DNA of 64,000 nt from Piromyces finnis finn (GCA_002104945.1 MCFH01000058.1:186001-250000), one strand, 5' to 3'; positions 9,169 to 43,111 are shown, counted from the first letter of the stretch. The notes: a model not told the origin generated them from the letters alone. Made by a program: numbers and translations.

Positions 9169-9171
9169 AAA

Positions 9172-14315: not shown

Positions 14316-14412
<97 letters not shown>

Positions 14413-14447: not shown

Positions 14448-15259
14448 TAATATAATTTGATAATAATCTTAATTTTGAATTTTACTTCAAAAAGTGATTA
14501 TTATATTATATCTTTTGTTATAACTATATAAGTTATATTGATTAAGATTTAAAATCGTTTTTATAAAAATTAATAAAATTGTTTTGTTAAAACACTAAAT
14601 GGTTTTATTAGAAACACTTGTTTTTCTAATATTTAAATATTTAAAATTTTATTTATTTAAGTATAAAAGTGATTGTTAAAATTATAAAATATTAATCTAA
14701 CTATATAATATTTCTTTATTAATAATAATAATAATGATTAAAATAAGAATATTTACATGTATTTATATTTTCTTTTAGATTTAAACTATTTACATTAAAA
14801 CAATAAAATTAATAACTATTTACAATAAAAGTAATAAAAGTAATTAGAAATGACAATAAAAGAAATAATTAAAAGTTAAAGAATATAAAAAGTTGTTTAT
14901 TTTACAATTAATTAAAGTAATAATTATTTTTTAATGTTTTAATAAAGGTGTTTAATTATATTATTTTATAACATGAATTATTATATTTGTTTACTTTTAA
15001 AGTGTAATTTACTAACGAAGTTATTAAATATTTAATTTAACAATTAATTTAACAAAAGTTATATATTTTGATCTCGATTAATTAAAGCTTATTATTTTCT
15101 TTCAATAATCAAAATATATGCAGTGTTTAGGATTAATTTTATTTAAGAATTTTGGTAAAGTACTTAATTAAACTATAACTTGTTTTAAGTTACTTTTAGG
15201 GTTAACTTAAAAATCAGGTATAATAATAATTTTATATTTATTAAATTCATTATTTATCA
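14448..15259. repeat. Solo LTR family A
   Basis: Colinear with 8358-9168; starts 3 nt after the B LTR end. Confidence 0.8.
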
Positions 15260-15262
15260 CAA

Positions 15263-16028
15263 TGTAATAATTATATTATATTTACTATATAATAATAATT
15301 ATTAGCTTTAAATTAATAATATAAATTATTATTAAAATGTGAAAATAAAGGTAGAATTAGAAACTTAATTTAATGAGTTTATTATAAGAAATTATAATAA
15401 ACAAACACCAAACGTATCAGAATTATTTTGTGTATTTAATAGTTTTTTAATATTTATTTTATTACTTATTATTTTGTATAAAGTTATTTATTATAATTAA
15501 TCTTATAATAATAACTTTTGATTTCTCAAATCGAACTCAAGAGTACTATTTATATGTTTTATTTTATTAAATTAAAATTTCTAAGAACATTCTAATCTTA
15601 ACAAAAATCTTTTTAGGAAAAGACTAGAAGAAAAACCTAAAAAGTTATTTGATTGATATTCTAATCATACCAATCATCGTAATATTAAGTAAAGCCGTTG
15701 ATAACGGGTAAAACCTTAATATCCGATTTCCTATTACATACTAATATATAGTTGTATAATATTATTAATGTAATTAGTATATGTTTTACCTTTTATAATA
15801 CAAGTGTATATAAATGAATGTATAAATACATAATTAAATAAATTAATTAATCTAATATAGTGAATGAATAATTATTAACTAAATAAATATTTACAATATT
15901 TAACTTAACAAATAACTATAATAGTAAATAAATATATTAATATAATTTAATGGATTAATGATTATTAACTAAATAAATTATTTATAATGTTTAATACTAA
16001 GAATAAATAATAAGTATTTATTCTTACA
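15263..16028. repeat. Solo LTR family K
   Basis: TGTAA...CTTACA termini; 5-bp TSD CACAA/CACAA overlapping the A LTR end; diverged inverted relative at 43112-43930. Confidence 0.75.
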
Positions 16029-16034
16029 CACAAA

Positions 16035-16656
16035 TGATAAATAATAATTATAAATATATTATACATTTGATATTAGTAGAAAATTTTATTATAAAATAAT
16101 TATTAAATAATTTTATATAGTTTATTATAAAAATATAATTTACATAAAATCAAATATTTTATAAATTTATATATTTGATTGGGTTAAATTATAAAAATAA
16201 TTTTTAATATAAAGAATAATAATATTTTTTTAGTACAAAAATGAGAAGACTTAGATTATTAATAATAAGTTAAATTTTAATAATAGTTGATATAATTAAT
16301 TAGTTAATACATAATAATATTTAAAAGACAAAAATAAGTTTTTATATAATAAAAATTATTGTTAAAAAGAGTGTAAAAACAATAAATAAAAGAAAATATA
16401 AAAACGAAATTAAACTTGTCTAATTTGTAATTATTGTGTTAATAATAAATAATATTTTATAGAATAAATCTGGTGTTATCATTCTATATAAATATTATTA
16501 GAATAATAAAACTATTAAAATTATAAAACAAATTAAATATATTAATAAAACTAGTAGATATTGTTAAAGCTCGTACAATAGCTGTCGAGATAAAACAATA
16601 TAAGATAACAGAAGAAATAGTTAAAAAGTTGTAATATAACTACCAATCCGTTATCA
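16035..16656 (+). repeat. Solo LTR family D (opposite orientation to the full D element)
   Basis: Reverse complement of 36671-37294; 4-bp TSD CAAA/CAAA. Confidence 0.85.
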
Positions 16657-16661
16657 CAAAA

Positions 16662-17091
16662 TGATACAATAGAAAAATATTATCTTAATTCTATAAATGA
16701 ATATAGAAAGTGATAATATTTGTATCTAAAAAAAAATAAAAAAAAAATAAAATAAATGATTTTTATACTTGTTCATTTGCAAGTATTAGTTAATGTTTAA
16801 AAATATAAAGTTTATTTAATTATAAAATTATATCATTATTTAATAACTCTAGTATTATTAAATAAAAAAAAATGTATGTTTTATATTCTAATTTTCAGGG
16901 ATTATTAGTAACCCTTTTAAAAATAACTTTTATTATAAAATCATTTTTGAATTTAATATTTAAAAATATATATCTAATTTTTCGCTCTAGATTATTAGGA
17001 ACATCTTTTAAAATAAAGTAATTCTATCACTATTTATACAAAATTATTATTTTAAAGTATAATTATAAACAAATATAAACTATTTAATTTA

Positions 17092-17122
<31 letters not shown>

Positions 17123-18310
17123 TTTACATTTATAATTTTTAATTTAATAATTTTATACATGTTAATTATTTTAATTTTTAACTATCTGTGTTTTAATATT
17201 ATTATTATTATTATTTGTAAAAGTTTTACTAAACTTATAATTTAATATTAAAATATTAAATTAAATAAAAGATTAAAGATAACTAGGTTAGAAAAAAATG
17301 TTTTATTAAAATAATCTTAATTGTTTTATAAATGAATAATTAAATTATGTATTATAGTTAAAATAATTTCTTTTTATTTTATTTGAAGAGTATGTATAAT
17401 AATAAGATTATTTAATAGTAATACTTGTTAAGTATTAATAAGGTAATAATCTTTACAAAGATTTAATTCATAAAACTATTCTAGACTATTTATACTATTT
17501 GTAATTTTGCATTTAATACTAAAATAACTTTTTAGTACATGATTATATTCATATATTCATAATATATTTTATAATACTAAGGCTAAACTTAAGACTTATC
17601 ACTAATTATTAAAAATAACTATTGTTTATATATTCATAATATTAATTATTTCTTAATTATAATATAATTCATTGAATATAATATTAGTAATTATAATCTT
17701 TTAATTCAAATATTATAAGTTATATTATTGAAATAATTATTATAAAATAAAGTTAATTAATTCCGGAAAATAATTTTAATTTAATTAAAACAATAATTTA
17801 TATCCTTTTGGGTGAATGATTTATGTTTGATACATCAGGGGTGATCATTCTCTGAATAAACAATTAATCATTACTAACAAAATATCTTTAAATTGGAATA
17901 TCTCGTGAACCAGCAGAGATATTGACCTGATTTTAAGATATGTTGTTTATCTCAAGCGTGGCTTTTTAACGAACCCACAATCTCCCAACAATAATTTCCA
18001 AAAAATCGTCATTCGTTGAGGAGATACGCGTGTTTTCCCTTATTTAATTTTGACGATAAGGGTTAAAGTTATTTGTTATAAAATTATTAAGGGTTAAGGT
18101 CATATCTTAACCTTTTCTAAATTTTTTAAATATTTCTTAATATAATTTTATAATTTATTTGAAAATAAAATATTATTGATTTTGAAATTTTATAAGTAAT
18201 TTCACAATTTCAAGTGATCTTGAAATTGCAGATTCCACTAGTATTCGTGACATTATTATTATTATTATTATTATTATAAATTCATAATTTATAAATTTAA
18301 TTATTTATCA
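16662..18310 (-). repeat. Solo LTR family B interrupted by a G solo LTR
   Basis: B-LTR sequence at 16662-17215 resumes at 18253-18310. Confidence 0.75.
17216..18252 (-). repeat. Solo LTR family G (diverged)
   Basis: TGTAAAAG...GTGACA termini as at 28643-29831; 5-bp TSD TTATT inside (ATT)n. Confidence 0.85.
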
Positions 18311-18313
18311 AAA

Positions 18314-20410
18314 TGATGCGTTGACCGATATATTTGTGAATAATATAATGTTTTTAATAAATAATAAATTCTATATTATTATGATGAAACAATAAATTTA
18401 AAATAAAATAAAATATGTTTTATAATTAACAAATAAATCACTCAAAACTCGAAAATAAACTCTTATTATGTTTTAAATTAAATCTTTATTATATTTTATA
18501 ATTTATTTATTCTCTATTTATTGTCCGCCCTTTATAAAGAAGAATTTTATCTTCCTTTTATACATTTTCATTTATTACATGTATTATTATTTTTAACTAT
18601 TAAATGTTATTATTACTATTGTTATTATTTATTAAAATTAAAAGAATAAATTAAAATTATGTCTTAGTATTATAAAATATTATAGAATATTACTTATTTG
18701 ATTTTCTTATTACTTCAAAATGTTTAAATTTAGAAAAATTATTATAAATTATCATTGACTATCATTAAATGTATAATACCTTGAATAAAATAATTAAAAT
18801 TTAAAATTAAAATAATATTAAAATAAAATTAAAATAAAATTAAAATAAAAATTTAACAAAATTAAAATATTAAAAGTATCAATTATTATAAACACTCATT
18901 TTATACAGAAACATAAAAGAGTTCTGTATTTTATCTTTGGAATTGTTATTATTGTTCTATTTCCAGGTTTTAAGTTTATCATTTTAATAATAATTACTCA
19001 ATTAGTTATTTATTAATTTATAAGTTTAAAGAAATTTCTAAAGAACACTTGGATAAAACACTAGAATTAATAATTTGATGTATATCATTTTATTTTTAGT
19101 TTATTTATTCATTTTTATTTATTTATTTATTATTATTTTATTATTTTAATACATTATTGGATTAAGTCATTTTATTTTATTTAATAATTTATTTTATTAT
19201 TATCACAATTAGGTCGTTTTTACTTAGAATTTATTATATAATAAAGAGAATATTATTTATTTAAAAAAAAAGGGTTATATTTTCATAAAATTATTATTCA
19301 TTCATTTTTAAAGGTTATTTTCATTTATTTTTATTATAAGTTACTATGGGTTAAGTCGTGTGTTAAGTTTTTGGATTTGGTTATGCGGCCAGGTCAGAAT
19401 GTTATCAATTATATAGTAAATATGTTTTTAAGAAATTAAATTTAAATATAAAATAACCCTTTAAACTTCCAAATGAAAAATTAATATTTATTCTTTAGAA
19501 TAACTTTTTTTTTATAAAATTTTATTTATTTATTAATAATAATATAAATGATAATATATTTAATAACTATATAATTAAGATTATAACTATAATCTTTACA
19601 AAGAATTAAAATCAAATTCAATTCATTCTATTTTATATTCTTTGTTCAGATTATTAAATTGATAAAAATAAAGTATTACATGTAATATGTTAATAATATA
19701 ATAAGATTGTTTGTTTGTTTGTTTGTTTGTTTTGTCATGACATAAAATAAAATAAACATATGATTAATCATTTAAACACTTGATCCATTAACCTATTTTA
19801 TAATAATTAAAATTATTTAATTTATAAATGTTAACTGTTACACCTAAATGGTTTAGTTCTATTTTTAGTAACAGTCACTATCATTAATTAAATTAATATA
19901 ATTAGAATTTCTATTGATATCTTTTTAATTTTCGTCAAGTCATAAGAAATGTCTATGATCCATACTTGATATCATATTAATTTTAATTTACTTATTAAAA
20001 TCTTCAAATGATCATATCTTCCTTAAATGACCAGTTAGAAGGACCGCGATTATACCAAAATATAGCTTTTCCCTTAAGCTTTCTAATAAACTTGGTTTCA
20101 CAACCGTAGTACTTACAGCCGTAGCACTCGTTTTTGGCGAGTTATGCGTAGTTTCGTATTTGTTTGTTTTTGACTAAGGGTTATAGTGTATTGATATTAA
20201 ATTTTTTGAAATCATAACCCTTTCACTGAACCAAAATTTAAAAGGTGACTTTTAAAGGTGTTTTAAAATAATTATTGGGATCATTTAATTCTAATTATTA
20301 TGTTTAATTAATTATAGATATTATCTGAATTTGTTTTAAATCCAGTTAATATCTTCACAACGTGTTTATTCAGCTAGTTTTTATCATGTTTTTATGTGAG
20401 TAGCGTATCA
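18314..20410. repeat. Solo LTR family C interrupted by solo LTR I
   Basis: TGATG...GTATCA termini; uninterrupted copy at 42057-43108 shows the empty site aagtcgtgtttatt. Confidence 0.8.
19361..20359. repeat. Solo LTR family I
   Basis: TGTTAAG...CTTCACA termini; TSD TCGTG/ACGTG; copies at 43939-44899 and 63277-63851. Confidence 0.8.
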
Positions 20411-20415
20411 TAAAT

Positions 20416-21077
<662 letters not shown>

Positions 21078-21604
21078 AAATAATTGTAAAAGGTGTTTTT
21101 ATAATATTAGTTAATAAGTTATTAATATTTAGCTAATTAAGTTAGTTATTACCTCTCTATACGAGTTAATAACTAAATAAAGTTTTATAAAAAATAATAA
21201 AAGAAATAAAATAAATATTATAACACTAAAATAATTACAAACAAACGTATAAAGATTTTATGAAATAATGTTTACTTAAATAATTCTATATTAATTATAT
21301 CTTTTATTTATTAATTATAATTATATACATTAATTATTATTATAGTTACTAATTTACTTTAATACTAACGCTAAAGTATTTAACGTTAGTTTCAACTATA
21401 CTATTTAACTATATTAGTTTATTTTCTTTACCACTTGATTGGGTAAAGTAAATAAACTTCCTATTTAATTAATAACCATTAATATATGGTTATACATATA
21501 TCTGGCCAATAAATGGTGACCAGAATATATGGTTTCAATTGAAATATTTGTGGGCAAACTTATGGCCACAAATATTTCTTACAATGCCCCCCTAAGGAGA
21601 AAAC

Positions 21605-24600
21605 CTAAGCAGGGTTTTGGACACTAACCATGAATTCCTGGTAGCATTTATCTTGAAATTCCTTGAGTAGCTTATCATAATGGGAGTTCTTGTCAATGAT
21701 ATCAGCATCAACCCACTTTTGCCTAAAGTCACTAAAGGTAGCTAAGTATTGATAGTTATCCTTCTTTCTTCTGGCATTCATGATTTTGATGATTTTCTGG
21801 TAGCTCACTGGTGCAGGTGTTAGTTATTCAGGTTTGTTATGGTAGGGTTCAAGTTCACTGATATGAAACACTGGGTAGACGTTGGGGAAAGGTGACTTGC
21901 TGATATCCAACCGGTAGTTAAGCTTGCTTTCATCAATTCCAATAACCTTGAAGGGACCGTACTTTCTTGCTTGTAGCTTGTAGAAGGGAAGAGGGTTGTA
22001 ATTTTCTGGTTTTCTTAACCACACCAAATCCATGAGCCTAATTTTAGGGTAGTTAAGTTCTCTTCTATGGTCCAAGTGGTCTAAGAACCGTGTTCTTGAT
22101 ATGTCCAGCATGTGCTTTAAGTTACCTAAGTTGTGAGCGAAGCTATCTAATATAGGAGCTTCGCCAAGTGTAAAGATATAAGATATATCTTTAGATTATT
22201 TAATAATTAATTATTAATTATTAAATAATAAATTAATATTTAGTAAAACTGATTATAAAATTTTTGAATAAATTTTATGGAATAATTTAATAATAAATTA
22301 TTTTATAATAATTCCGTTAAATTTAAATTAAGATAAATATTTAAGTTTAAGGAATAAAAGAATTTTAATTAAATTTAAATATTTCAAATATTTAAAATAA
22401 TTAAAATATTTTTTAAATACTTTTTATTTAATTTTAGAATAGATTATACTTTTTTATTTAAATTTAGAATAGTTTAATAATTTTAACTTAGTTTTAAAAA
22501 TAGATTTATTTATATTTCAATAGGAAATATATTAAGAATAGTATTGATAATATTAAATTAATTTATAGAAAATACATGGGCTTTATTCAATTTTGAGTTT
22601 ACTCAAATTGAATTAAAAGTATAATGAATTAGTTTAGTTTAGTTCTGTTATTTTATTATTTAATTAAATTAGTTTTGTTTATTTTATATTAAATATATGT
22701 TTATTTAAATAGAATAATATATTAGAATATAATTATGAAAAAATATAAATACATGTAATTTTTATTTGTTAAATCGATGTAATTGTTATTTTCAATTTTT
22801 TAATTATTAACTATTATATAGTTAATAATATTTTTAAGAGTTTAAATAAAATGTTTTCTTAAAATAAAAATTTAATGTTTTATTTTTTTATTTTTGTGTT
22901 AATAAAAATTGTTTTGTTTTAAGTATGAAATCTGTTTTAAATTTTATACTTTTACACCAAGTGAGTGGACAAGTTCTGAGTCTTGAGGGTTCATATGTAC
23001 CTGGTAGTTATACAAGGCTAGGAATGGGGACTGCTTAGTAGAACTGTGCACTGCATTATTATAACAGAACTCAGCTAAGTACAAGTACTTCAACCATTCG
23101 TCGTCATCAAAGGTCTTCACAAAGCATCTAAGGTACATACTTACGTAGGAGTTATTACGTTCTACCTGACCAACTGTTTCATGATGGCCAGTAGTAGCAA
23201 GGTTTACTTCTACGCCAAAGAACCCCATAATGTCCTTCCACAATTTACTAGTGAACTGGACACCACGATCCGTAGTAACCGATTTGGGACAACCATGTAA
23301 CTTGAATACATGTTGTAAGTATGCTAAGGCTGTTTCTTTAGCAGTAGGCATACTCCTAAATCCCACTAAGTGTATCATTTTGGTTAACTTATCGCTACAA
23401 ACCATGATACAACCTCTTCTAGTGACTTCTGGGGGTTCTGAGGGACTACTACCTGGTTTTCTGCGTTCCTTAATAGGTAGGTCCGTCAGGAAGTCAATTT
23501 CTACTTCTTGCCAAGGTAAGTCTGCAACTTTTACCCTAGCAGCGCTACCGTACGGCTTGTGTCTGTTGTCCTTTTGGGTACAACATATGGTGCAAGCTTT
23601 AATATAACCCGCAATGTCATCCTTCATTTTTGGCCAGTAATAGTTTCTGGCTATCAGGTCGTAAGTCTTATCCTTTCCTAAGTGACCCGCTGTTTCACTA
23701 TCATGGTTAAGTTTTATGATTGTTTCCCTTAACACCTTTGGTACATATGTACGTTCTGGTGCATCCTTCCTAACAATCAACCCATTAACCATCAACCACT
23801 TCTTTTTGATGAGCTTGTGGCCTCTTTTTGCGTCAAGACCATCTCTAATTTCCCTAGCAAGCTCATCCGTGTTGTAAGCTTGTTTCAATTCTCCCACGAA
23901 GCTTACTTCTAACACCGCATAGCACTCTTCTTCCACGGGTGGAAATTCTTTTACCTGTTCAGGTCGAAGAAGGCTAGCTTTTTCCATCTCCAGTTGTACC
24001 TGTTCTGGAGATACCATTCTTGATAGGATATCGGCTCTACCATTCATTTTTCCTGGCCGATATATTATTTCGAAGTTGTATGCAGCAAACAGCTCTTGCC
24101 ATCTTGCCTGTCTTGCTGTCAACAACTGTGGTTTTGTGGCGAACAGGAGATTCCTATGGTCACTATATACTAGGACCTTATGTTTCGCACCCATCAACAG
24201 GTGTCGCCACTCGATGAAAGCATTCCTAATAGCCAACAACTCCTTTTCCGTGATGGAGTAGTTGATTTCTGCTTTCGTAAGCTTCTTGGAATAGTAATAC
24301 ACAGGGTGTAATTCGTTGTCATCGCCTAGTTGTGATAATACACCACCCACCGCGTAGTTACTAGCGTCGCACTCCACTATAAACTGACGGTCATGATCAG
24401 GATATGCTAATACTGGTGGAGACAACAGCATTTCTTTTAACTTCTCGAACGCCTGGATGCGTTCTTCATTCCACAGGAACTGTACCTTTTTGGACGTCAT
24501 AGCATATAACGGCCTTGCTATCTTAGAGAAGTCCTTTATAAACTTCCTATAATAGTTGCAGAATCCAAGGAATGACTGTAGTTCTTTGAGGTTGGTTGGT

Positions 24601-27600: not shown

Positions 27601-27746
27601 TTAAGAAGAACTTCAATGTGTTGCATTGGGTTTACCTCACTATTATTAGTAAAAAAGAAAGAAGGATCAACAGGGGCGGGCATAGAATCCCCCTGTTGAA
27701 CCTGTAAATTCTGATTAGATTCGACCTCGGTGCTTTCGAGAAGCAC
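21605..27746 (-). pseudogene. F gag-pol single reading frame (Gag, PR, RT, RNase H, IN, chromodomain-like) with two in-frame stops and an LTR insertion
   Basis: LYDTGS protease, YLDD RT, H-H-C-C and DDE integrase, GPF motif; TAG at 26718-26720 and TAA at 21824-21826 are in frame; removing 22169-22956 restores LVHSLG-EAPILDSF. Confidence 0.9.
22169..22956. repeat. Solo LTR family J inserted in the F integrase
   Basis: TGTAAA...TTTACA termini; 5-bp TSD CCAAG/CCAAG. Confidence 0.9.
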
Positions 27747-28183
27747 CGGGGTTCGAACCCGTTACATTCCCTCTACACCATCCATGCCATCCGCGCTCGC
27801 CGCGTCAGGACGGGTCCCGTCCCTTACGAATGATGTTTTTGTGTCCAATTTATGGACACCTCGAGGGTTAGGAGACTTACCTGTATTTTTCATTTCTAAT
27901 TCAAAAATAAATTCTTTCAATAAATTAAAGAATTTATTATATAAAATATGATTGTGATGAATTTTAAAATTTGAAATAATGAATTTTTTATTACTAAACT
28001 ATTAGAAAATAATTATTTTTAATGATAAATTTACTTCTTTTAAATATAATATTTGAATATTATATAAAATATTGTAAATAATTATTATTAAACAATAATT
28101 TAAATAAAATAAAATATGTTTTTTAAGAACTTTTAATAAAACTAACCTAATTAAAACTAAGCTAACGTAAGAACTAACTATAA

Positions 28184-28194
28184 AGCGTTAGTAT
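28184..28194 (-). promoter_or_regulatory. Self-priming PBS of element F
   Basis: ATACTAACGCT on the sense strand abuts the 5' LTR and is complementary to LTR positions 28469-28479. Confidence 0.8.
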
Positions 28195-30756: not shown

Positions 30757-33700
30757 TTAGATTTTGTGTTTTCTAATACTTTTATTGAATTGAATTAATA
30801 ATTCTTGATATCTTGGGTCACTTTCTATTACTGTAGCAGGAACCCAGTGCCAACTTAGGCGGTGTTTATAACGAATTTTATATTCGTAGCGTTTTTCTTT
30901 ATAATTTGTCCTAAAGTCACCAATTTCTATAATTTCTGCATTAGTTTCTTTATATTTAAATCTATTTTTAAATTTATCTGGCGTAGATACATAAGGTTCA
31001 AGTTCCGATATGTGAAATACAGGGTGGTGTTTTGGAAAAGGTGATTTTGAAATATCTATTTTATAATTACCATTGTTTAAAACTTCTAAAACCTTGTAAG
31101 GACCATACTTACGAGGCGCTAGTTTGGCATTTTCAGTAGTAGCAAAAGCAGGAGGTGCATGAATCCAAACTTTTTGTCCTTCATTCAATTCAGGAGCAAT
31201 AATTCTTTTCTTATCGGCAGCTCTTTTGTATAAATCTTGAGATCTAAGCAAAACATCTTTAACTAAAAGGAAATTTTTACTAACATCTTTAATGTATTTA
31301 AAGTTTGAATCAGAACCTTGAAACAAAAAGACATCATCCATAGGTGGGTGGAATCCATAATTAATGAAAAATGGAGTTTGTTTTGTAGATTCATGAACTG
31401 TATTATTATAAACAAATTCAGCTAGATGTAACCATTCAATCCAGTCATCGTGGAAAAATGTTCTTGAATAGCAACGTAAATATTGTTCAATGAAAGAGTT
31501 ACAACGTTCTACTTGACCAACGGTCTCATGGTGATCTGTGGTAGCTATTTTTGGCTTAACACGCAATTTTTCCATAATTTCTATCCATAAAGCACTAGTA
31601 AATTGTGTTCCTCTGTCCGTATAAATATCTGTAGGTAGTCCATGGAGTTTAAAAATATTTTTTAGGAAAGCTTTGGCAGTTTCTTCAGCTGTAGGTATTT
31701 CTTTGAACGGAATAAGGTGAATCATTTTTGAAAAGCGATCTACAACAACCATTATAACGGAAAACTTTTTTGATTCAGGGAGACCACAAAGAAAATCGAT
31801 TTCAATAGATTTCCAAGGGCGATCAGGAATTTCTAAAGGTCTTAAAAGATCATATCTTTTATGTCTATTAACTTTATTTCTGGAACATTGTTCGCAAGAA
31901 TTGACAAAATTTACGATATCTTGATGCATTTTGGGCCACCAAAAATTACGGTTAATTAGTTCTTCAGTTCTTCGAATACCTAAATGACCAGCAGTAGCGT
32001 TATCATGGTACCTGGTTAAAATATCTACATGAAGTTTTTCTGGTACATAAATTAAATTATTATATAAAATTAAATTATTTTTTATTTTAAATTTTTCCAT
32101 TTTTCTGAAAGGTCTGTAAAAGTAACCTTGATTAGCATTATTAGGACTAAAGTAAAGATAAATATTATTCGCATTTTCATCATCCTTATAATTTTCTATT
32201 ATTTGATCAATGAGAGAACCAACAATACCAACAAAACATGGAGTATCGGGAACGTTTTTATAATCTAATATATGTTCTGGTTTAGGTTCAACATTATTTT
32301 TCTCGTAATCAGGTCTTCTTGATAAACTATCAGGTTTACCATTTTTTCTTCCTTGGCGGTATATTAATTGAAAATTATATTCTTGGAAAAATAAATGCCA
32401 ACGATGTTGACGTTGGTTTCCGACTTTACCACCTAAGGTGTATAGAAGGTTTTTATGGTCAGTAAAAACGGTTACTTGGTATTTAGCACCTAGTAATAAA
32501 TGTCTCCAGGTAGAAAATGCACATTTTATAGCTAAAAGTTCCTTTTCAGTAATTGAATAATTTAATTCAGCATTGTTTAAACATCTTGAATAATATGCTA
32601 CAGGATGTAATTTGTTATCTTCATCCTTTTGAGAAAGTATACAACCAATGGCAAAATTACTAGCATCGCATTCGACAATAAATGGTTTGGTTGGATCTGG
32701 ATGTAATAAAATAGGTGAAGAGATTAGTCTCTTTTTTAATTCTAAAAATGAGTTATTACATTTATCATTCCAATTAAAACTAGTATTTTTCTTTGTTAAA
32801 TTGTGAAGCGGTTTAGCAATAGTAGCAAAATCTTTTATAAATCTTCTATAATAGTTGCATAATCCAACAAAGCGTTGAACATCTTTTACACAATTAGGTG
32901 TAGGCCATTCTTGGACAGATTTAATTTTCTTTGGATCAGTAGATATACCATTGCCTGATATAACGTGTCCTAAAAATTCAACTTCTGGCTTGTGAAATTC
33001 ACATTTCTTTAATTTAGCAAATAAATTATTTTTGAGCAATGTTTGGAGAACAGTACGAACATGTTGTATATGTTCATCTAATGTTTCCGAGTAAATCAGA
33101 ATATCATCTAAATATAAAATAACAAATTTTTCTAAATAAGGGCGTAATACTGAATTAATAAATGATTGAAATGTAGCAGGGGCATTTCTTAAACCAAAAG
33201 GCATTACTAAATATTCATAGTGACCATATTTAGTTCTAAAAGCTGTCTTATATTCGTCTCCTTCACGAATACGCACTAAATTGTAAGCAGAACGAAGATC
33301 TAATTTTGAAAAGAATTTAGCACCTTTCACTCTTTCGATAATATCAGTAATTAGAGGAAGTGGGTAAGAATTGCGAATTGTAACTGCATTTAATTTTTTG
33401 TAATCAATACAAAGACGTAACGATCCATCCTTCTTTTTCTGAAATAAAACAGGATAACCAGCTGGAGATTCAGATGGTCTAATGAATCCTTTCTTGAGAT
33501 TTTCATCTATGTATTCTTTAAGAACTAGAGATTCATCTTCAGATAGAGGATATATAGGACCATAATGTAAAGAAGCATCTTTTTGTAAAACGATTTTACA
33601 ATCCGTTAGCCTATGTGGTGGTAGTTTATCAGCCTTAACCTTGCTGAAAACTTCCGCTAAATCACGATATGGTTCTGGTACTTCTTCTAATTTGAAGTCT

Positions 33701-34362
33701 TCTTCATTATCATCTTCATCATCAGTATTATAATCTTTTTCACTATTAGCTAAAAATGAGTGAATAAAGTAATTATAGCTGAAATTTTGATATTTTGGTT
33801 TAGAGTAATTTTTCAAATTATTAAAAGATGTATTGGAAGTTAATTTATTATGATTAATGTTTTTAATTTTTAAATTTTTGGATTTATTCAATCGGTTTTT
33901 ATTAATTTTATATATAATTTTATTAGAATTTAATTTTTTAAAATTGTTAAAATTTAAACTTGAATATACAAAATTTTTATTATAATTAAAATGTAGTTGA
34001 TATTTGTGTAAAAATTTATTGCCTAATAACAAATCTGTTGGAAGATTTTTAATAATTAGAAATTTTTCTTTAAAAGTAATTAAAAATTTTGAATGATTAA
34101 TATAGATAGTAGTCTTAAAATATAAGAAGGTGTATGTATCAATAAATATTGAACCACTAATTCCATTTATTTCAATTGAGTGTAATAATTTGTGTGGTTT
34201 TAGTTTTAATTTATTGACCAAGTTGATTGAAATAAAGTTGCAATATGAGCCACTATCTAAAATTAAATTGTATTGATTTTTATTAATTGAATTTTTTAAA
34301 TCATAAAGTTTGTTTAATTTAATTGGGATAAAAAATTTTAAGTTGAAAAATGTTGTAGGCAA
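30757..34362 (-). CDS. pol: G Pol (PR-RT-RNase H-IN-chromodomain), reached by -1 frameshift from about 34458
   Basis: LDSGS, YLDD, HHCC, DDE and GPY motifs, C-terminal chromodomain-like segment; the frame is open back to the slippery site. Confidence 0.93.
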   Translation of the reverse strand: MPTTFFNLKFFIPIKLNKLYDLKNSINKNQYNLILDSGSYCNFISINLVNKLKLKPHKLLHSIEINGISGSIFIDTYTFLYFKTTIYINHSKFLITFKEKFLIIKNLPTDLLLGNKFLHKYQLHFNYNKNFVYSSLNFNNFKKLNSNKIIYKINKNRLNKSKNLKIKNINHNKLTSNTSFNNLKNYSKPKYQNFSYNYFIHSFLANSEKDYNTDDEDDNEEDFKLEEVPEPYRDLAEVFSKVKADKLPPHRLTDCKIVLQKDASLHYGPIYPLSEDESLVLKEYIDENLKKGFIRPSESPAGYPVLFQKKKDGSLRLCIDYKKLNAVTIRNSYPLPLITDIIERVKGAKFFSKLDLRSAYNLVRIREGDEYKTAFRTKYGHYEYLVMPFGLRNAPATFQSFINSVLRPYLEKFVILYLDDILIYSETLDEHIQHVRTVLQTLLKNNLFAKLKKCEFHKPEVEFLGHVISGNGISTDPKKIKSVQEWPTPNCVKDVQRFVGLCNYYRRFIKDFATIAKPLHNLTKKNTSFNWNDKCNNSFLELKKRLISSPILLHPDPTKPFIVECDASNFAIGCILSQKDEDNKLHPVAYYSRCLNNAELNYSITEKELLAIKCAFSTWRHLLLGAKYQVTVFTDHKNLLYTLGGKVGNQRQHRWHLFFQEYNFQLIYRQGRKNGKPDSLSRRPDYEKNNVEPKPEHILDYKNVPDTPCFVGIVGSLIDQIIENYKDDENANNIYLYFSPNNANQGYFYRPFRKMEKFKIKNNLILYNNLIYVPEKLHVDILTRYHDNATAGHLGIRRTEELINRNFWWPKMHQDIVNFVNSCEQCSRNKVNRHKRYDLLRPLEIPDRPWKSIEIDFLCGLPESKKFSVIMVVVDRFSKMIHLIPFKEIPTAEETAKAFLKNIFKLHGLPTDIYTDRGTQFTSALWIEIMEKLRVKPKIATTDHHETVGQVERCNSFIEQYLRCYSRTFFHDDWIEWLHLAEFVYNNTVHESTKQTPFFINYGFHPPMDDVFLFQGSDSNFKYIKDVSKNFLLVKDVLLRSQDLYKRAADKKRIIAPELNEGQKVWIHAPPAFATTENAKLAPRKYGPYKVLEVLNNGNYKIDISKSPFPKHHPVFHISELEPYVSTPDKFKNRFKYKETNAEIIEIGDFRTNYKEKRYEYKIRYKHRLSWHWVPATVIESDPRYQELLIQFNKSIRKHKI

Positions 34363-34419
34363 TTTTTTATTTATTTTAGAGTCATATGTAGGAAAGTTGT
34401 AATGTATTATTTTTGTATT

Positions 34420-34464
34420 ATGAACTCTCTTAGACTCTCTTGAGAGTTCATTTCTTAGTTTTTT
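34420..34464 (-). promoter_or_regulatory. -1 programmed ribosomal frameshift signal of G
   Basis: A AAA AAC (34464-34458), 6-nt spacer, 10-bp stem ATGAACTCTC/GAGAGTTCAT with a 12-nt loop. Confidence 0.85.
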
Positions 34465-35365
34465 GAGTTCATTTTTTGAACTTTATTGACATAATTATTA
34501 TTATTGTTTGAATTTTGATAATGGGTTTTATTCTTATTGAATTTCCTATTGTTTCTCTTATTGTAATGTTGATTTTTATTATTATTATTATTGATATTTA
34601 ATTTATTATTAGTAGCAAGAGAATTTTCAAAAATTATACACTTTGTAACCATTTCACTTAAAGTGTTAGGTAAAATATCAGCTTTCTTAATTTCATTCTT
34701 ATATTTTGGATGTAAACCATTTAAAAATATTAGTGAAAGACTAATGTCATCTATCTCTAAACAACGACTTAAATCTCTAAATTTGTTAATATAATCGTTC
34801 ACTTTTCTATAAGCTTGTCTTAATTCTATTAATTGAATCATGGCTAATTTGGTACTGGTAACATTTGAAAAAGCTTTGTTTAATTCACTTAATAGTTCGT
34901 TCATAGTCATAGGAGTAATACCATCTTTATATTTAATATGATACCAAGTTCTGGCAGAATCACGTAATCTAACAACAACAAAGTTAATTTTTACTTCTTC
35001 AGATAGTTGATTGTTAGGTGGAGTTTTAAAGGTAGCTTGGCAGAGTTCGCAGAATAACTCAGTCTGAGTAGTATCACCAGTAAAGAATCCTGGATCTGGT
35101 ACTTGTTTGATAGGATAGGTTCTATTACGCATTATAACATCATGGTCTTCATCATAATCAGTAGAAGATTCCTCGGTTTCAGTATAATTAGCACGACTCT
35201 TAAGTTCCTTTAACATAGCATCCATACGTTCTAACAAGGAGGTGGTATTTTTATCCAATTGTTGAGTGATATACTTGTCTAATTCACCACAAAGATTTTT
35301 CTTAAATTCTTCTAAATCTTGAGGCTTTAGGAATTGTTGAACTGGTTTAGGTGTTGGTTGAGTCA

Positions 35366-35366
<1 letters not shown>
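34455..35366 (-). CDS. gag: G Gag (capsid-like, no zinc knuckle)
   Basis: Retrotransposon gag motifs (PGFFTGD, LRDSARTWY, FLNGL) upstream of pol. Confidence 0.88.
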
Positions 35367-35401
<35 letters not shown>

Positions 35402-35442
35402 AAATTAAGTTTTTTCCTAAGGTAGTTATGGTAAAAAACGCG

Positions 35443-35453
35443 GTAAAGATTAT
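35443..35453 (-). promoter_or_regulatory. Self-priming PBS of element G
   Basis: ATAATCTTTAC abuts the 5' LTR and is complementary to LTR positions 35815-35825. Confidence 0.78.
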
Positions 35454-37628
35454 TGTAAAAGTTTTACTAAACTTATAATTTAATATTAAAATATCAAATT
35501 AAATAAAAGGTTAAAAGATAACTAGGTTAGAAAAAAAAATGTTTTATTAAAATAATCTTAATTGATTTATAAATGAATAATTAAATTATATATTATGGTT
35601 AAAATAATTTCTTTTATTTTATTTAATAATATATTGCTAAAATATAATAATAAGATTATTTAGTAGTAATACTCATTAAGTATTAATTATTATTAATAGT
35701 TAATAATTTCTAGTTAATAATCTATAGTTAATAATTCATAGTTAATAATTTATAGTTAATAATTTATAGTTAACAATTTATAGTTAATAATTTATAGTTA
35801 ACAATTTATAGTTAATAATCTTTACAAAGATTTTAATTTCATAACTATTCTAAACTATTTATACTATTTGTAATTTTACATTTAATAATAAAATAACTTT
35901 TCAATACATGATTATATTCATAATATATTTTATAATACTTAAACTAAACTTAAGACTTATTCCTAATTATTAAAAAATAACTATTGTTTATAATATTCAT
36001 AATATTAATTATTTCTTAATTATAATATAATTCATTGAATATAATATTAATAATTATAATCCTCTAGTTCAAAGATTATAAATTATGTTATTGAAATAAT
36101 TATTATAAAATAAAGTTAATTAGTTCCGGAAAATAATTTTAATTTAATTAAACAATAATTTTTTATACTTTGAGTGAATGATTTATGTTTGATATATCAG
36201 GGGTGATCATTCTCTGAATAAACAATTAATCATTGCTAACAAAATATCTTTAAATTGGAATATCTCGTGAACCAGCAGAGATATTGACCTGATTTTAAGA
36301 TATGTTGTTTGTCTCGAGCGTGGCTTTCTAACGAACTTAATTATAACCAAAATATTATTATTCAAAAATCGTCATTCGTTGAGGAGATACGCGTGTTTTT
36401 TCTTATTCCATTTTAACGATAAGGGTTAAAGTTATTTATTATAAAAATTATTAAGGGTTAAGGTCATATTTTAACCTTTCCTAAATTTTTAAATATTTCT
36501 TAATAAAATTTTATAATTTATTTGAAAATAAAATATTTGTTGATTTTGAATTTTCATAAGTGATTTCATAATTCCAAGTGATCTTGAAATTGTAATTTCA
36601 CTAGTATTCGTGACATGGTTTCAATTGAAATATTTGTGGGCAAACTTATGGCCACAAATATTTCTTACAATGATAACGGATTGGTAGTTATATTACAACT
36701 TTTTAACTACTTCTTCTGTTATCTTATATTGTTTTATCTCGACAGCTATTGTACGAGCTTTAACAATATCTACTAGTTTTATTAATTTATTTTAAGTTAT
36801 TTTATAATTTTAATAGTTTTATTATTTTAATAATATTTATATAGAATAATAACACCAGATTTATTCTATAAAATATTATTTATTATTAACACAATAATTA
36901 CAAATTAGACAAGTTTAATTTCGTTTTTATATTTTCTTTTATTTATTGTTCTTACGCTCTTTTTAACAATAATTTTTATTATATAAAAACTTATTTTTTT
37001 TGTCTTTTAAATATTATTATGTATTCACTAATTAATTATATTAACTATTATTAAAATTTAACTTATTATTAGTAATCTAAGTCTTCTCATTTTCTACTAA
37101 AAATTATTATTATTCTTTATAATAAAAATTATTTTTATAATTTAACCCAATCAAATATATAAATTTATAAAATATTTGATTTTATGTAAATTATATTTTT
37201 ATAATAAACTATATAAAATTATTTAATAATTATTTTATAATAAAAATTTCTACTAATATCAAATGTATAATATATTTATAATTATTATTTATCAAGATTT
37301 CCTCCCCTAAGATACGACTTAGTGGTAGCTGATAAAAATATTCATAAATAATAATAAATATATAAGTTTTTGATATTTTTATACTAAAGATTTAAAAATT
37401 TAAATTTTTTTTTTTTCTATATATATGATAAAAATAATATAAAATAAGGTTTATAAAAAAAATGATGAAAAATTTGAAAATTTTTATTAATAAAATTTTT
37501 TTTTCAAAGAGAAATAAAAAAAATGAAGTGAAATTTTGTTAAATGTCGTAGTGTAAATATTTTTGTGTTTTTATATATTTTTGTAATGTAATTGTCGTAT
37601 TATTTGTATATAAATGTTTAATGTGGTT

Positions 37629-39458
37629 TTATCTTTCTTTAAACTTTGAAAATAGATGAAATTTTGATTTTAATATGTCGAAATAATGTCGTTTTAAAAT
37701 TGAAGTTACTGATTTGATATAATCTTTTAGATTGAAAATAATTGAATTTGAAATACTTTCTTTTACACTTTTTATTATACTGAAATATATATTCTTAAAC
37801 GAATTATTTGATGAATTTTTGATTATATCATTTTGTTTATTTCGCTTTTTTCTTGATTTTAATTTCCTGTTAATATTAATATTCAAATGATTATATTTTA
37901 GAATTTTACTTTTATTTTTATATATCTTGATTTTGTGGCATTTTTCGTGAATAATTGGCGTTTTTTCTGCTTCATCACGGCCGACAAGATTTGACTTATT
38001 AATTGAAAATTTAATAAGTGAATCGTTTTTAATTCTTTTTGGAAATTTGCTGAAATTTGAATGAAAAATGTGATATTTTGGATAAAAATATTTATTTTTA
38101 AATTTGATTAAATGTCGAAATTTAATTGAATATAAAAGTTTGTTTTTATTGTTAAAAGTCGAATTAAAATTTTGAATTTTGATATTATTATTAAATGAAT
38201 TAAATTGAGATTCATTAATATTTGATGGATTGAAACAATGAATCATTGAAATATTTGAAAGATTATTTTTATTTTGTTTAAAATTTGAGGGACGAGCAAC
38301 CATAATAGGAGATGAATTAGTTTTCATGTAGAGAGAGTCATCATCAGGATCAATGTATAATCGGTGATTCTTTTGAGATTGACGACCTAATATAATATCA
38401 TAACATGAATCTTCATCTTCTAGAATCCAGAATAATGCATAGATTTTTAAATCACCAAATTTAAGAGTTAAATTAACAGCTTGATTTGTTGAAATAACTT
38501 GTTTGCTAGCTAATTTAAAGAAAGTTCTCTTAAAATGTGTAATATTATGATTTGCTGATATTAAATTAAAGAAGGATTTAGTAATAACATTAACATCAGA
38601 ACCAGTATCTACTAAAACTCGGACAATGTTATTATCAATTGAGCCAATGACAGAAGCAATGTTGATTTTATTAATGACATTAATTTCGTTATCTGCTATA
38701 TTGATAATATCATCATCATTGTCATTATCAGCATCATCATTGTTTTCATTATTTTTATTATTATAATTTTCATTAATGATATTAATAAATGAATTAATAT
38801 CATCATCATTAAGATCCATATTTTGAATGGCGTTTATTTTCCGAACGTCATTTGGATCAAGCTTTAAACCTTTGGCACAAAGTCTTCTGATGATAGGACT
38901 GACTGCAAGCAATTGTGCAAAAGAGATACCAGCATTTGTATTATTAAGGGCATCAAAAATATTATATTCTTTATTTTTGCCCAACATGACAATAGAACGT
39001 AGGAAGTCATAATAGTTGCTTTTGGGAGACTTTTTGCTATCTATAACTTCTTCTAATTCGTCCTGTTTACTTGGTATATCTGGACCAATTCTTCTTTTAT
39101 TTCTGGTTTCTTTATTTTTCATCTTAGCAGAGGAAATATTCTTGCCTGCAATTACCGAGGGGTCTAAGATGTCTAGGCGGGAAGTAGTGGTATGAAAATT
39201 TGAATTTTTCTCATTACGAATTTCTTGCTGTTCTTTCATCTGAGTGGCCTTTGTATGTATTGGTAATGGATTTTCTCGAAGTTTCTTTTTCTTCGACTGA
39301 GTCACGTGATCCTCATCATCACTTTCATCACTTTCTTCAGAACTTTTTCTCTTGAATGCATAAATAAGGTTTTCGATGTCCTTATCATCGACTGTATTTG
39401 TCACGTGATCACGTGTAACGTAATCCTTATCATCTTCATTGATTGGATCATCCACCAA
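37629..39458 (-). CDS. D second ORF: aspartic protease with low-complexity flanks (frame open back to about 39625)
   Basis: LVDTGS and IILGR protease motifs; ISFAQLLAVSP segment; C-terminal part is AT-driven low complexity. Confidence 0.8.
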   Translation of the reverse strand: MVDDPINEDDKDYVTRDHVTNTVDDKDIENLIYAFKRKSSEESDESDDEDHVTQSKKKKLRENPLPIHTKATQMKEQQEIRNEKNSNFHTTTSRLDILDPSVIAGKNISSAKMKNKETRNKRRIGPDIPSKQDELEEVIDSKKSPKSNYYDFLRSIVMLGKNKEYNIFDALNNTNAGISFAQLLAVSPIIRRLCAKGLKLDPNDVRKINAIQNMDLNDDDINSFINIINENYNNKNNENNDDADNDNDDDIINIADNEINVINKINIASVIGSIDNNIVRVLVDTGSDVNVITKSFFNLISANHNITHFKRTFFKLASKQVISTNQAVNLTLKFGDLKIYALFWILEDEDSCYDIILGRQSQKNHRLYIDPDDDSLYMKTNSSPIMVARPSNFKQNKNNLSNISMIHCFNPSNINESQFNSFNNNIKIQNFNSTFNNKNKLLYSIKFRHLIKFKNKYFYPKYHIFHSNFSKFPKRIKNDSLIKFSINKSNLVGRDEAEKTPIIHEKCHKIKIYKNKSKILKYNHLNININRKLKSRKKRNKQNDIIKNSSNNSFKNIYFSIIKSVKESISNSIIFNLKDYIKSVTSILKRHYFDILKSKFHLFSKFKER

Positions 39459-39590
39459 AGGGTTAGAGAATTTTTCTTTAGAATTTGGAAATTTTTTTGT
39501 TTTATGGAAATCACGTGTATCATCAACATAGATTTGCTCATTAATGTTGTTGATGTTGTGGGTTTGGTTATTATCAATTTTGGAGTTAGA

Positions 39591-39626
39591 AGGGGAAGAT
39601 TGAGAACTTCCCCCATTTAATTTAAA
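39591..39626 (-). promoter_or_regulatory. -1 frameshift signal of D
   Basis: T TTA AAT (39626-39620), 5-nt spacer, stem GGGGGAAG/CTTCCCCT; the -1 frame is open into ORF 37629-39458. Confidence 0.8.
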
Positions 39627-40471
39627 TGGTTTTGGGTTTTGAGGAGGGTAGCTATGATTTTGTTCACATCGGTCATTTCGTTTGGGCAGAAGCGGGCATC
39701 ATGTCCTTTCTGGTTACAACGGTGGCAGATATGAATTTTCATCTGGGCAAGGCTTTTGGTCAAAGCATCCAGATCTGATTCTTTAGCTTCTTCTTTAGTA
39801 GTCTTTTCATTATCAGTACTACTATTATTTTCGTTATTATTATAAGAGGTTTTATCTTCAACTTCTATTTTTCTCTTATAATAATTATTTTTGTTTTGAG
39901 TTCTTTTATTGGGTACATATTCATCATCACTTTCATAAGCAGATAGAAGCTCATCTGCTTTAATAGCAATGACCATAGCATCCTTTAAAGTTTTTGGTTG
40001 TTTGTTAATAAGAGAATTTAATATAGAAGTTCTCCTATTAAAAGCTTTTGTATAAAGAAAAACAAGTCTTTCTTCAGAAGGCTTGTCCCTTTCTTTAATT
40101 TCTTTCAAAAGGTCGTTAAAAGAACGGTTAAATTCTCTAACAGAGCTTTTGTTTACTTTTATTTTTTCTAACTTATTTAGGTTTCTATTAGAGGTTTTAT
40201 CATCCTCAAATAAGTTAGATATTTTATTGATAAATTCATTATAAGATAGGGATCTATCTTCATAATAAATATCACTACAAAGATCCTTTGAGTTACCGGT
40301 AGTAGCAAGCAAAGCAATTCTCTTCTTTTCTTTTTCAGAAAGAGCTAAGTCTTCTAAGATATCTTCAAGTTCCATTTTCCATCTGAAGAACTTAGTATCT
40401 TTCTTGCCAAGAGGGCTTATTTCTTTAGCCATACTAGCGGCTCTTTCAAAATTGTTTTTATTTTCAGTCAT
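39617..40471 (-). CDS. gag: D Gag with CCHC zinc knuckle
   Basis: CHRCNQKGHDARFC knuckle; position directly after the PBS. Confidence 0.88.
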   Translation of the reverse strand: MTENKNNFERAASMAKEISPLGKKDTKFFRWKMELEDILEDLALSEKEKKRIALLATTGNSKDLCSDIYYEDRSLSYNEFINKISNLFEDDKTSNRNLNKLEKIKVNKSSVREFNRSFNDLLKEIKERDKPSEERLVFLYTKAFNRRTSILNSLINKQPKTLKDAMVIAIKADELLSAYESDDEYVPNKRTQNKNNYYKRKIEVEDKTSYNNNENNSSTDNEKTTKEEAKESDLDALTKSLAQMKIHICHRCNQKGHDARFCPNEMTDVNKIIATLLKTQNHLN

Positions 40472-41209
40472 ATTTAGTAAATAAATAAGATAATTATACT
40501 AAATATACTAATTAATAGGAATTATTTAAATTTTCGGCTTTCCCACGGGACGACTGAGGTTCTCCACCACTTGATAACGGATTGGTAGTTATATTACAAC
40601 TTTTTAACTACTTCTTCTGTTATCTTATATTGTTTTATCTCGACAGCTATTGTACGAGCTTTAACAATATCTACTAGTTTTATTAATTTATTTTAAGTTA
40701 TTTTATAATTTTAATAGTTTTATTATTTTAATAATATTTATATAGAATAATAACACCAGATTTATTCTATAAAATATTATTTATTATTAACACAATAATT
40801 ACAAATTAGACAAGTTTAATTTCGTTTTTATATTTTCTTTTATTTATTGTTCTTACGCTCTTTTTAACAATAATTTTTATTATATAAAAACTTATTTTTT
40901 TTGTCTTTTAAATATTATTATGTATTCACTAATTAATTATATTAACTATTATTAAAATTTAACTTATTATTAGTAATCTAAGTCTTCTCATTTTCTACTA
41001 AAAATTATTATTATTCTTTATAATAAAAATTATTTTTATAATTTAACCCAATCAAATATATAAATTTATAAAATATTTGATTTTATGTAAATTATATTTT
41101 TATAATAAACTATATAAAATTATTTAATAATTATTTTATAATAAAAATTTCTACTAATATCAAATGTATAATATATTTATAATTATTATTTATCAACAAT
41201 AATCAATTG

Positions 41210-41281
41210 GGAGGGTTGGCGCAACGGTAGCGCGTCCGCCTCCAGAGCGGAAGGTTGGGTGTTCGAATCACTCACTCTCCA
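41210..41281 (+). tRNA. tRNA-Trp-CCA: tRNA-Trp (CCA)
   Basis: 72-nt cloverleaf; acceptor stem GGAGGGT/ACTCTCC; anticodon loop CTCCAGA; GTTCGAATC T-loop; T-rich terminator. Confidence 0.95.
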
Positions 41282-42053: not shown

Positions 42054-42056
42054 AAA

Positions 42057-43108: not shown

Positions 43109-43111
43109 ATG

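Follow-up and report, generated by a model that had tools for sequence, protein, structure and literature searches.

A stack of Ty3/gypsy-type insertions upstream of a tRNA-Trp gene in the anaerobic fungus Piromyces finnis

Results

The stack and its members

The genome of Piromyces finnis finn (GCA_002104945.1) comprises 56.5 Mb in 232 contigs and is very AT-rich. The stretch analysed here, called the window, consists of 64,000 nucleotides of one contig (MCFH01000058.1:186001-250000, or C187:186001-250000), and positions are counted from its first letter unless a contig is named. ARAGORN and Rfam find three tRNA genes in the window: a tRNA-Cys gene on the minus strand (7024-7097), a second tRNA-Cys gene on the plus strand (10678-10751) and a tRNA-Trp gene on the plus strand (41210-41281). 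Upstream of tRNA-Trp lies a stack of about a dozen insertions of the Ty3/gypsy type of long terminal repeat (LTR) retrotransposon. A preliminary description, made from the sequence, had noted an array of more than 26 kb at this place. The stack spans ~28 kb, and three nested insertions as well as an element resembling a terminal-repeat retrotransposon in miniature (TRIM) have been newly separated. It extends to the left of position 14448, with the TRIM-like element ending at 14444, and all of its long open reading frames (ORFs) are on the minus strand.

The elements were delimited by self-BLAST together with reading of every junction. Element letters are our own names; the preliminary description called our B ‘F’, our C-family solo LTR ‘B’ and our H ‘C’. 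Families ending 11-18 nt upstream of a tRNA gene are referred to as class I, and the F and G families as class II. Gaps were obtained by peeling the stack with a script, which removes each element plus one copy of its target-site duplication (TSD) and then measures the distance from the LTR end to tRNA position +1. The members are as follows, from the tRNA gene outward (PR, protease; RT, reverse transcriptase; IN, integrase).

41210-41281, plus strand: tRNA-Trp(CCA), the stack anchor (ARAGORN; Rfam RF00005, 65.3 bits), with a T-run terminator directly after it
36671-41195, minus strand: D, class I, non-autonomous; LTRs 36671-37295 and 40572-41195/6; gap 14 nt
36667-36670 and 41196-41199: TSD of D, ACAA
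39617-40471, minus strand: D gag with CCHC knuckle
37629-39458, minus strand: D ORF2, protease only
21085-36669, minus strand: B, class I; TSD ATAAT; gap 11 nt before the arrival of D
21085-21583: left LTR of B
28195-28642 and 36621-36669: right LTR of B, interrupted by F
22944-26708, minus strand: B pol, PR-RT-RNaseH-IN; C-terminus of IN broken
21824-22111: C-terminal SH3 domain of B IN
26718-27746: gag-like ORF of B
28643-36615, minus strand: F, class II, nested in the right LTR of B; LTRs 28643-29831 and 35454-36615; gap 65 nt at insertion
28638-28642 and 36616-36620: TSD of F, TGGTT
30757-34362, minus strand: F pol
34455-35366, minus strand: F gag
20416-21077: C-family solo LTR, class I; TSD AAAT; gap 13 nt
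18314-20410: H solo LTR, class I, interrupted by G; one-mismatch TSD AAAA/TAAA; gap 14 nt
19361-20359: G solo LTR, class II, nested 51 nt from the H end; TSD TCGTG/ACGTG; gap 65 nt
16662-18310: C-like solo LTR, class I, interrupted by an F-like LTR; one-mismatch TSD; gap 13 nt
17216-18252: F-like solo LTR, class II, 58 nt from the C-like LTR end, in a TTA repeat; TSD TTATT; gap 71 nt
16035-16656: inverted D-family solo LTR, 96.6% identical to D; TSD CAAA; gap 14 nt
15263-16028: K solo LTR, class I; TSD CACAA, which takes in the final CA of A; gap 16 nt
14448-15259: A solo LTR, class I; exact TSD CAAAA, which takes in the final CA of the TRIM LTR; gap 14 nt
12924-14444, minus strand: TRIM-like C-family element; left-LTR remnant, ~800-nt core without a long ORF, right LTR 13798-14444

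From D outward to A, the peeled class I gaps are 14, 11, 13, 14, 13, 14, 16 and 14 nt. The first four reproduce the values that had been given for D, B, the C solo LTR and H, and the remaining ones (C-like 13, inverted D 14, K 16, A 14) bear out the earlier estimate of ~13-16 nt for the members further left. The class II insertions give 65 nt (F), 65 nt (G) and 71 nt (the F-like LTR, where the distance spans the expandable TTA repeat), and each of them interrupts the preceding class I LTR within ~50 nt of its end. LTR ends are TG...CA, and TSDs measure 4-5 bp (5 bp for class II); the TSD was read in 11 members and is exact in 8. The single mismatches mentioned in the preliminary description were found in H and the C-like LTR, and also in class II element G. 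As had also been noted, the LTRs of D are identical (100% over 625 nt); those of F are 97.4% identical. Among the solo LTRs, that of C shares 99.3% identity with a copy at 54099-54644, and the nearest genomic copies of H are 96-97% identical. The TRIM-like element has an intact twin at 54098-56059.

LTR ends lie 11-18 nt upstream of most sampled tRNA genes

The spacing was followed through the genome by a search with the Rfam tRNA model (RF00005), which gave 63 best-scoring genes; 30 loci were taken, and 20 were added by coordinates. After dropping the second genes of dicistrons and identical contexts, the sample comprised 50 tRNA transcription units, including the three of the window. Units were chosen by their tRNA without regard to LTRs, and the upstream sequence was read directly and scanned with a library of LTR termini from the window. 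A histogram of BLAST alignment ends was too noisy in AT-rich DNA and was replaced by terminus motifs and reading by eye.

In 41 of the 50 units (82%) an LTR end was found 11-18 nt upstream, with a mode of 14 nt (five units at 11 nt, five at 12, three at 13, fifteen at 14, six at 15, six at 16 and one at 18). Three further units carry an LTR end at 22-28 nt, two of them paralogous at 22 nt and one at 28 nt in a disrupted upstream tRNA-Glu, and six units are empty. The preliminary description had staked its reading beforehand on a genome-wide peak at about 10-17 nt; the peak found here supports its view of the tRNA gene as a point from which the stack grows through a narrow upstream window. Automatic matching recovered 29 of the 41 class I ends, the others belonging to families outside the library that were called by eye. 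Library termini occupy 0.22% of pooled positions, so that 1.8% per unit is expected in an 8-nt window, compared to 29 of 50 units observed (P about 7e-38). A chance origin of the excess is excluded.

Ten isoacceptors are targeted, including Arg, Glu, Gly, Thr, Ala, Cys, Trp and Ser, and both orientations were found for B, C, D, A and K. In the Glu-Arg and Gly-Thr dicistrons the insertions are upstream of the first gene. These apparent dicistrons exist in many copies (loci L033-L041, L052, L054 and L060-L079), with spacers of 10 nt between tRNA-Glu and tRNA-Arg and 8 nt between tRNA-Gly and tRNA-Thr; in some copies the upstream tRNA-Glu is disrupted by an E-type LTR end (L052) or by an internal deletion (L038-L040). 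A whole-genome search for a B LTR end followed by a gap and a B box returned 20 matches against none in the reversed control, mostly with gaps of 11-14 nt and preceding Arg, Gly, Trp, Ser, Glu and other tRNA genes. The D family was traced through 30 LTR loci, of which six have a tRNA gene (three different Trp genes, one Glu and two Ser) at 13-17 nt, with the D LTR always on the 5′ side. Because the flanks differ, these six insertions are independent events. At C187:42858, a paralogous locus has a B LTR and tRNA-Trp with nearly the same spacer and without D, and is effectively an empty site for D.

Such a distribution might arise if integration were untargeted or weakly biased and selection cleared the other copies, leaving tRNA neighbourhoods as a safe haven. 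Families do have hundreds of copies in the genome, and gene-poor, AT-rich tRNA neighbourhoods would tolerate insertions. However, selection cannot give single-nucleotide precision, as seen in the mode at 14 nt, in a second band at 64-67 nt and in the ~12:1 orientation bias of that band (see below). It also leaves the same spacing before scattered short interspersed element (SINE) heads unexplained, and copies that are 99-100% identical already show the pattern. We therefore regard this explanation as hardly credible.

F and G end 64-67 nt upstream, almost always in one orientation

The second distance class was observed in the same sample. F-type ends lie at 64-67 nt in seven units and G-type ends at 65-67 nt in four, with one more G end at 97 nt (P about 2e-30 for class II). 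In the whole genome, the pattern of an F end, a gap and a B box gave 14 matches against none in the control, 11 of them within a 6-nt band. The corresponding figures for G are 19 against none, with 16 in a 6-nt band and three shifted by 9-11 nt; the shift is probably explained by tRNAs with a long variable arm. Only three matches were obtained for F in reverse orientation. Two of these are duplicates of one solo LTR, which sits 64-65 nt from two divergent tRNA units at once. The orientation bias is about 12 to 1. In F, the 5′ LTR is nearest to the tRNA gene and the element points away from it; this polarity was read from F, G being a solo LTR.

What separates the class II end from the tRNA gene is the tail of the proximal class I LTR, which belongs to at least ten different families or orientations. 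The total distance stays constant at 64-67 nt, whereas the share taken up by the host LTR is 44-54 nt and shrinks as the class I gap grows. The ruler therefore starts at the gene and not at the LTR. A metagenome contig that is rich in AT and comes from another organism carries a relative of F (64% pol identity), whose start lies exactly 64 nt from a divergent tRNA-Val gene, on its upstream side, with no LTR between the two. The spacing appears to be inherited within the F lineage. No tRNA was found on two further contigs of F relatives, and contigs of B relatives from other organisms had no flanks to read.

These data bear on the possibility that the elements recognise a DNA sequence or structure, such as an AT-rich motif or an LTR-LTR junction, rather than the RNA polymerase III (Pol III) machinery. 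The spacers are A-rich, many young D copies sit where two LTR ends are 4-7 nt apart and where no Pol III gene was detected within 1.5 kb, and LTR-LTR junctions would resemble the junctions of LTR circles. On the other hand, spacer sequences differ among targets, and class II keeps its 64-67 nt over more than ten unrelated intervening sequences as well as over the non-LTR spacer of the metagenome contig. Sites without an earlier LTR are also used, for example SINE heads in unique DNA. Recognition of DNA itself is for these reasons very improbable.

Tandem arrangements of several families were seen. At C135:109910-115092, five F solo LTRs ~4 nt apart lie in tandem in one C-like LTR and end 64 nt before tRNA-Ala. 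Two F-like elements share one LTR on metagenome contig L085, and H-family elements on contigs C74 and C79 form arrays that share LTRs with a 5.57-kb period.

SINE heads are used like tRNA genes

At 62577-63130 the window contains a retroposon of ~550 nt whose A- and B-box-like motifs (GGTTCGACCCC at 62635), poly(A) tail and TSD of ~11 nt (TCTTCAAAATT) mark it as a tRNA-derived SINE; it has no match in Rfam. An ORF of 756 aa at 2297-4567, in which a reverse transcriptase is the sole domain, may belong to a non-LTR element, and in that case to a possible mobiliser of the SINE.

Exact SINE heads number 137 in the genome. By eye, class I LTR ends were found 7-11 nt upstream in ~19 of 100 heads among the matches listed, including one in the window, where a C-family LTR ends 10-13 nt before the head, and one beside a D copy that lacks a tRNA gene. 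The tRNA-like +1 position lies ~3 nt inside the SINE, so that the geometry equals that of tRNA genes. Because SINE heads are used with this same geometry, the common denominator of the targets is the internal Pol III promoter and not the tRNA sequence. Among the loci examined, no class I LTR end before a 5S or U6 gene was seen.

A full-length element lies beside the in-window SINE:

56051-62554: E, full Ty3/gypsy element; TSD AATTA; LTRs 99.4% identical; canonical chromodomain

E is inserted 7 nt inside the end of the C-family LTR, 22 nt before the SINE head. E-type ends occur 18-22 nt before two SINE heads and ~28-30 nt before tRNA genes (up to ~33 nt, where the tRNA start is unclear), about eight cases in all. 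A class at −28 nt for this chromodomain element is tentatively proposed from these positions.

Just before gag, the leader of B (27735-27835, minus strand) includes a GC-rich stretch with hairpins, which contains the B-box-like palindrome GGGTTCGAACCC. A different B copy (L011, C1:134660) has an N-family LTR and a D LTR inserted at one point ~76 nt upstream of that palindrome. The leader may act as a Pol III decoy. The tRNA-like stretch in it was considered as a tRNA and rejected, as no cloverleaf fold was found by inspection.

Order of insertion

Some of the order within the stack can be read from overlaps. D came after B, because the TSD of D contains the last three bases of the B LTR. Similarly, the TSD of K holds the terminal CA of A and that of A holds the terminal CA of the TRIM LTR, which gives the order TRIM, A, K; the TRIM-like element is the oldest member that can be ordered. 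From nesting it follows that F came after the right LTR of B, G after H, and the F-like after the C-like LTR. Neighbours without overlap, such as the C solo LTR and B, leave the same final sequence whichever came first.

According to the preliminary description, each newcomer had inserted between the tRNA gene and the previous element, so that age would rise leftwards along a chronological array. The first statement holds for class I, but F and G enter the previous LTR 64-67 nt upstream of the gene, and the left-to-right order is for this reason no simple time line. As to the array, the orders given above are proven by TSD overlap or nesting, whereas a leftward age gradient could not be demonstrated. 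Identity to the closest copy was tried as a proxy for age; from the tRNA gene outward it is 100% for D, 97-99% for B, 99.3% for the C solo LTR, 97% for H, 96.6% for inverted D, 97.9% for A and 98.3% for the TRIM-like element. These values are not monotonic, and their small differences are not decisive. A strict left-to-right chronology is only partly supported.

The divergence of the B LTRs had been contrasted with the identity of the D LTRs as a sign of age. They do differ (92.5% identical, that is 7.5% divergence), but the pol ORF of B still has 1254 codons. At least seven other copies match the left LTR at 99% identity, while the right LTR reaches at most 97% with a different set of copies of different element length. 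Because the two LTRs match different sets, the divergence reflects a chimera of two subfamilies and not age. LTR-pair divergence should not be read as age before a check for subfamily chimeras.

Two stacks elsewhere were compared. The one on contig C135, with an older LTR carrying a nested G, then the C-like LTR with its five F solo LTRs, before tRNA-Ala, is consistent with the growth model. The one on contig C8 speaks against a strict age order: between its D copy, which is young (99.7%), and tRNA-Arg lie older-looking LTRs, namely a D-like one (93%), one of another kind and a B LTR. This arrangement, like the young D copies without an anchor, may result from very fast turnover, from reshuffling by ectopic recombination or from insertions away from an anchor.

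Recombination could also be given the leading part: a few initial insertions would then have been multiplied into the stack, mainly by segmental duplication and by ectopic recombination between LTRs. tRNA loci have indeed been duplicated, since the downstream flanks of many tRNA copies agree over more than 100 nt. A paralogous locus with B LTR and tRNA-Trp exists on the same contig, B carries LTRs of two subfamilies, tandem arrays with shared LTRs occur elsewhere, and A followed by H is seen again to the right of tRNA-Trp. Against this, every stack member has its own TSD, and the peeled gaps return to 11-16 or ~65 nt, which rearrangement would not keep. Furthermore, the proximal position is held by different families at different paralogous tRNA copies. 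An origin by duplication and recombination of this kind is improbable; recombination probably reshuffles stacks but does not create them.

Families and proteins

The pol proteins of B, F and E have the Pfam domains protease, reverse transcriptase, RNase H and integrase in this order. For B and F, the best match in the PDB is Ty3 Gag-Pol (7Q5B), with E values of 1e-118 and 1e-136. The preliminary description had several unrelated families sharing the targeting. Several families do so, but they are not unrelated: all three window pol proteins are Ty3/gypsy, with 45-51% mutual identity. An SH3_Tf2-1 domain is present in B and F, whereas the Pfam chromodomain was detected in E only and in neither B nor F. 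The gag proteins match the Pfam families Ty3_capsid (D) and Retrotrans_gag (F). LTR termini and a primer-binding sequence are common to D and the C family, and A and H have the same terminal motif. In the B pol ORF, between protease and reverse transcriptase, four tandem 45-nt repeats (25405-25623) code for a repeated 15-residue peptide.

The two proteins of D are a Gag bearing a zinc knuckle and a protein of 609 aa that contains a protease motif. As it is without reverse transcriptase and integrase, D is non-autonomous and must be mobilised in trans. At least 40 D LTR copies are 99-100% identical, and several full copies have the same ~4.5-kb structure. By these identities D is the youngest family, and families with identical LTR pairs are apparently still active. 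Three public runs (X5-X7) from two other studies, guessed to be RNA, contain contigs of the D internal region with at least 99% identity. This is compatible with transcription of D and is not proof of it. No empty-site joint of D was seen in assembled contigs of public runs.

Other features of the window

The two tRNA-Cys genes at 7024-10751 are divergent, with 3.6 kb between them. An LTR ends 14-15 nt upstream of either gene, and the pair represents two small stacks facing each other. To the right of tRNA-Trp, a second stack (41300-46100) starts 19 nt past the 3′ end of the gene and consists of A-like, H-like, inverted K-like and G-like LTRs and more, 1-3 nt apart. A fixed LTR distance past tRNA 3′ ends was sought in 50 loci and none was found; the A-like LTR 19 nt after tRNA-Trp is for this reason probably the far end of another stack. 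An alpha/beta-hydrolase gene lies further right on the minus strand (49017-50003). Its product shares 85% identity with proteins of Piromyces sp. E2 and P. finnis and 76-78% with those of rumen Oscillospiraceae. The gene seems to be one that anaerobic fungi gained from bacteria.

Discussion

We consider it very likely that the stack represents at least 12 separate Ty3/gypsy integrations, together with solo LTRs, aimed at the Pol III complex on one tRNA-Trp gene. Each class I newcomer lands between the gene and the previous LTR, a space of a few bases, and pushes older copies outward. In the mechanism that we propose by analogy with Ty3, class I integrases would dock on TFIIIB (TBP/Brf1), which is positioned by TFIIIC bound to the A and B boxes, and the C-terminal region of the integrase would read the position. 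Class II integrases might dock on the upstream face of the same complex with fixed polarity. LTR-LTR recombination would then reduce many elements to solo LTRs, and recombination between stacked copies would blur the time order. Whether distinct integrase lineages thereby read at least two, perhaps three, fixed distances off the same pre-initiation complex, ~−14 for many families in either orientation, ~−28 for the chromodomain element and ~−65 for F and G in one orientation, we regard as evenly balanced.

Several points weigh against integration aimed at the Pol III complex. That insertion occurs where Pol III transcription starts is deduced from how far the LTR ends lie from the mature tRNA 5′ end, and the contact between integrase and TFIIIB is proposed here by analogy with Ty3. 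The sample of 50 units was seeded from two isoacceptor families, and many paralogues share downstream flanks, so that the units are not fully independent. Among 17 young D insertions read on both sides, ten adjoin no recognisable Pol III gene: nine lie between two LTRs or beside one, and the tenth (L011, C1:134660) is flanked by the GC-rich B leader on one side and an N LTR on the other. These D copies may have been followed by many insertions that are younger still, or else some insertions occur away from an anchor. An Rfam search of 20 D loci without tRNA found no other Pol III gene, and one of these loci proved to be a SINE without an Rfam entry. Finally, neither a tRNA gene nor a SINE head nor a B-box anchor was found for the right-hand stack from 41300 onward.

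The elements described here resemble Ty3 of S. cerevisiae in their Ty3/gypsy gene order, the narrow window just upstream of tRNA genes, the short TSD and the use of other Pol III genes. Ty3 inserts in either orientation, as class I does here, and its sigma elements lie 16-19 nt from the tRNA gene. Unlike Ty3, the LTR ends of the stack are 11-16 nt from the mature tRNA end, many families coexist, 82% of sampled units are occupied and stacks reach tens of kb; the host belongs to the Neocallimastigomycota and not to the yeasts. In Ty3, the C-terminal SH3-like domain and a vestigial chromodomain of the integrase bind TBP/Brf1 of TFIIIB and act as a ruler (PMC8632968; reviewed in PMC5911963). Further Ty3/gypsy elements that insert ~5-30 bp upstream of tRNA genes are DGLT-A of dictyostelids, Tj1 of Schizosaccharomyces japonicus, Tca8/beta of Candida albicans and Ylt1, Tyl3 and Tyl6 of Yarrowia; DGLT-A inserts in either orientation at ~15 bp and is reported to be inactive (PMC5006619, PMC4600332, PMC5911963). 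The hosts of these elements have compact genomes with modest copy numbers, whereas in P. finnis the youngest family has LTR pairs that are 100% identical and several distance classes coexist.

The dictyostelid non-LTR elements TRE5-A and NLTR-B use windows of 40-54 and 39-64 bp upstream, TRE5 in a fixed orientation opposite to the tRNA gene (PMC5911963, PMC5006619). Class II resembles them in geometry only, being far upstream and pointing away from the gene: TRE5-A and NLTR-B depend on an endonuclease and target-primed reverse transcription, unlike F, which has LTRs, an integrase and a 5-bp TSD. The Pol III-targeting LTR elements known so far are Ty3, Ty3p, Tj1, Tca8/beta, the Yarrowia elements, DGLT-A and Skipper-2, and the review table contains no LTR element with a window as far upstream as that of class II (PMC5911963).

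Two other groups can be compared. Ty1 of S. cerevisiae (Pseudoviridae) is a copia-type element that integrates up to ~1 kb upstream of Pol III genes via AC40. It likewise targets Pol III genes and forms LTR clusters at tRNA genes, but its window is broad and nucleosome-phased, unlike the site of single-nucleotide scale seen here. E was also considered as a chromovirus of the kind that targets heterochromatin, with a canonical chromodomain at the integrase C-terminus. It has the chromodomain; however, its ends lie near SINE heads and tRNA genes in about eight cases.

As the preliminary description had supposed, literature searches on anaerobic fungi (Neocallimastigomycota) found no report of tRNA-gene targeting by Ty3-like elements. 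The finding is a new occurrence of a known strategy, and what is unusual are the near-saturated tRNA genes, the many families and the orientation-biased LTR site at 65 nt. Ty3-like targeting of tRNA genes, known from yeasts and social amoebae, would thus extend to a new host group, and the pattern explains much of the repeat architecture of an anaerobic fungal genome. If true, no Pol III site that is both far upstream and orientation-locked would have been described for LTR elements before the −65 site. The interleaved stacks would likewise provide a natural system for dissecting integrase-TFIIIB/TFIIIC geometry in site choice, and comparative material on the docking of integrase to TFIIIB. 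Anaerobic fungi are hard to manipulate genetically. For these organisms with few genetic tools, the elements would offer a natural machinery for site-specific integration and, if the interpretation is true, a basis for safe-harbour insertion tools.

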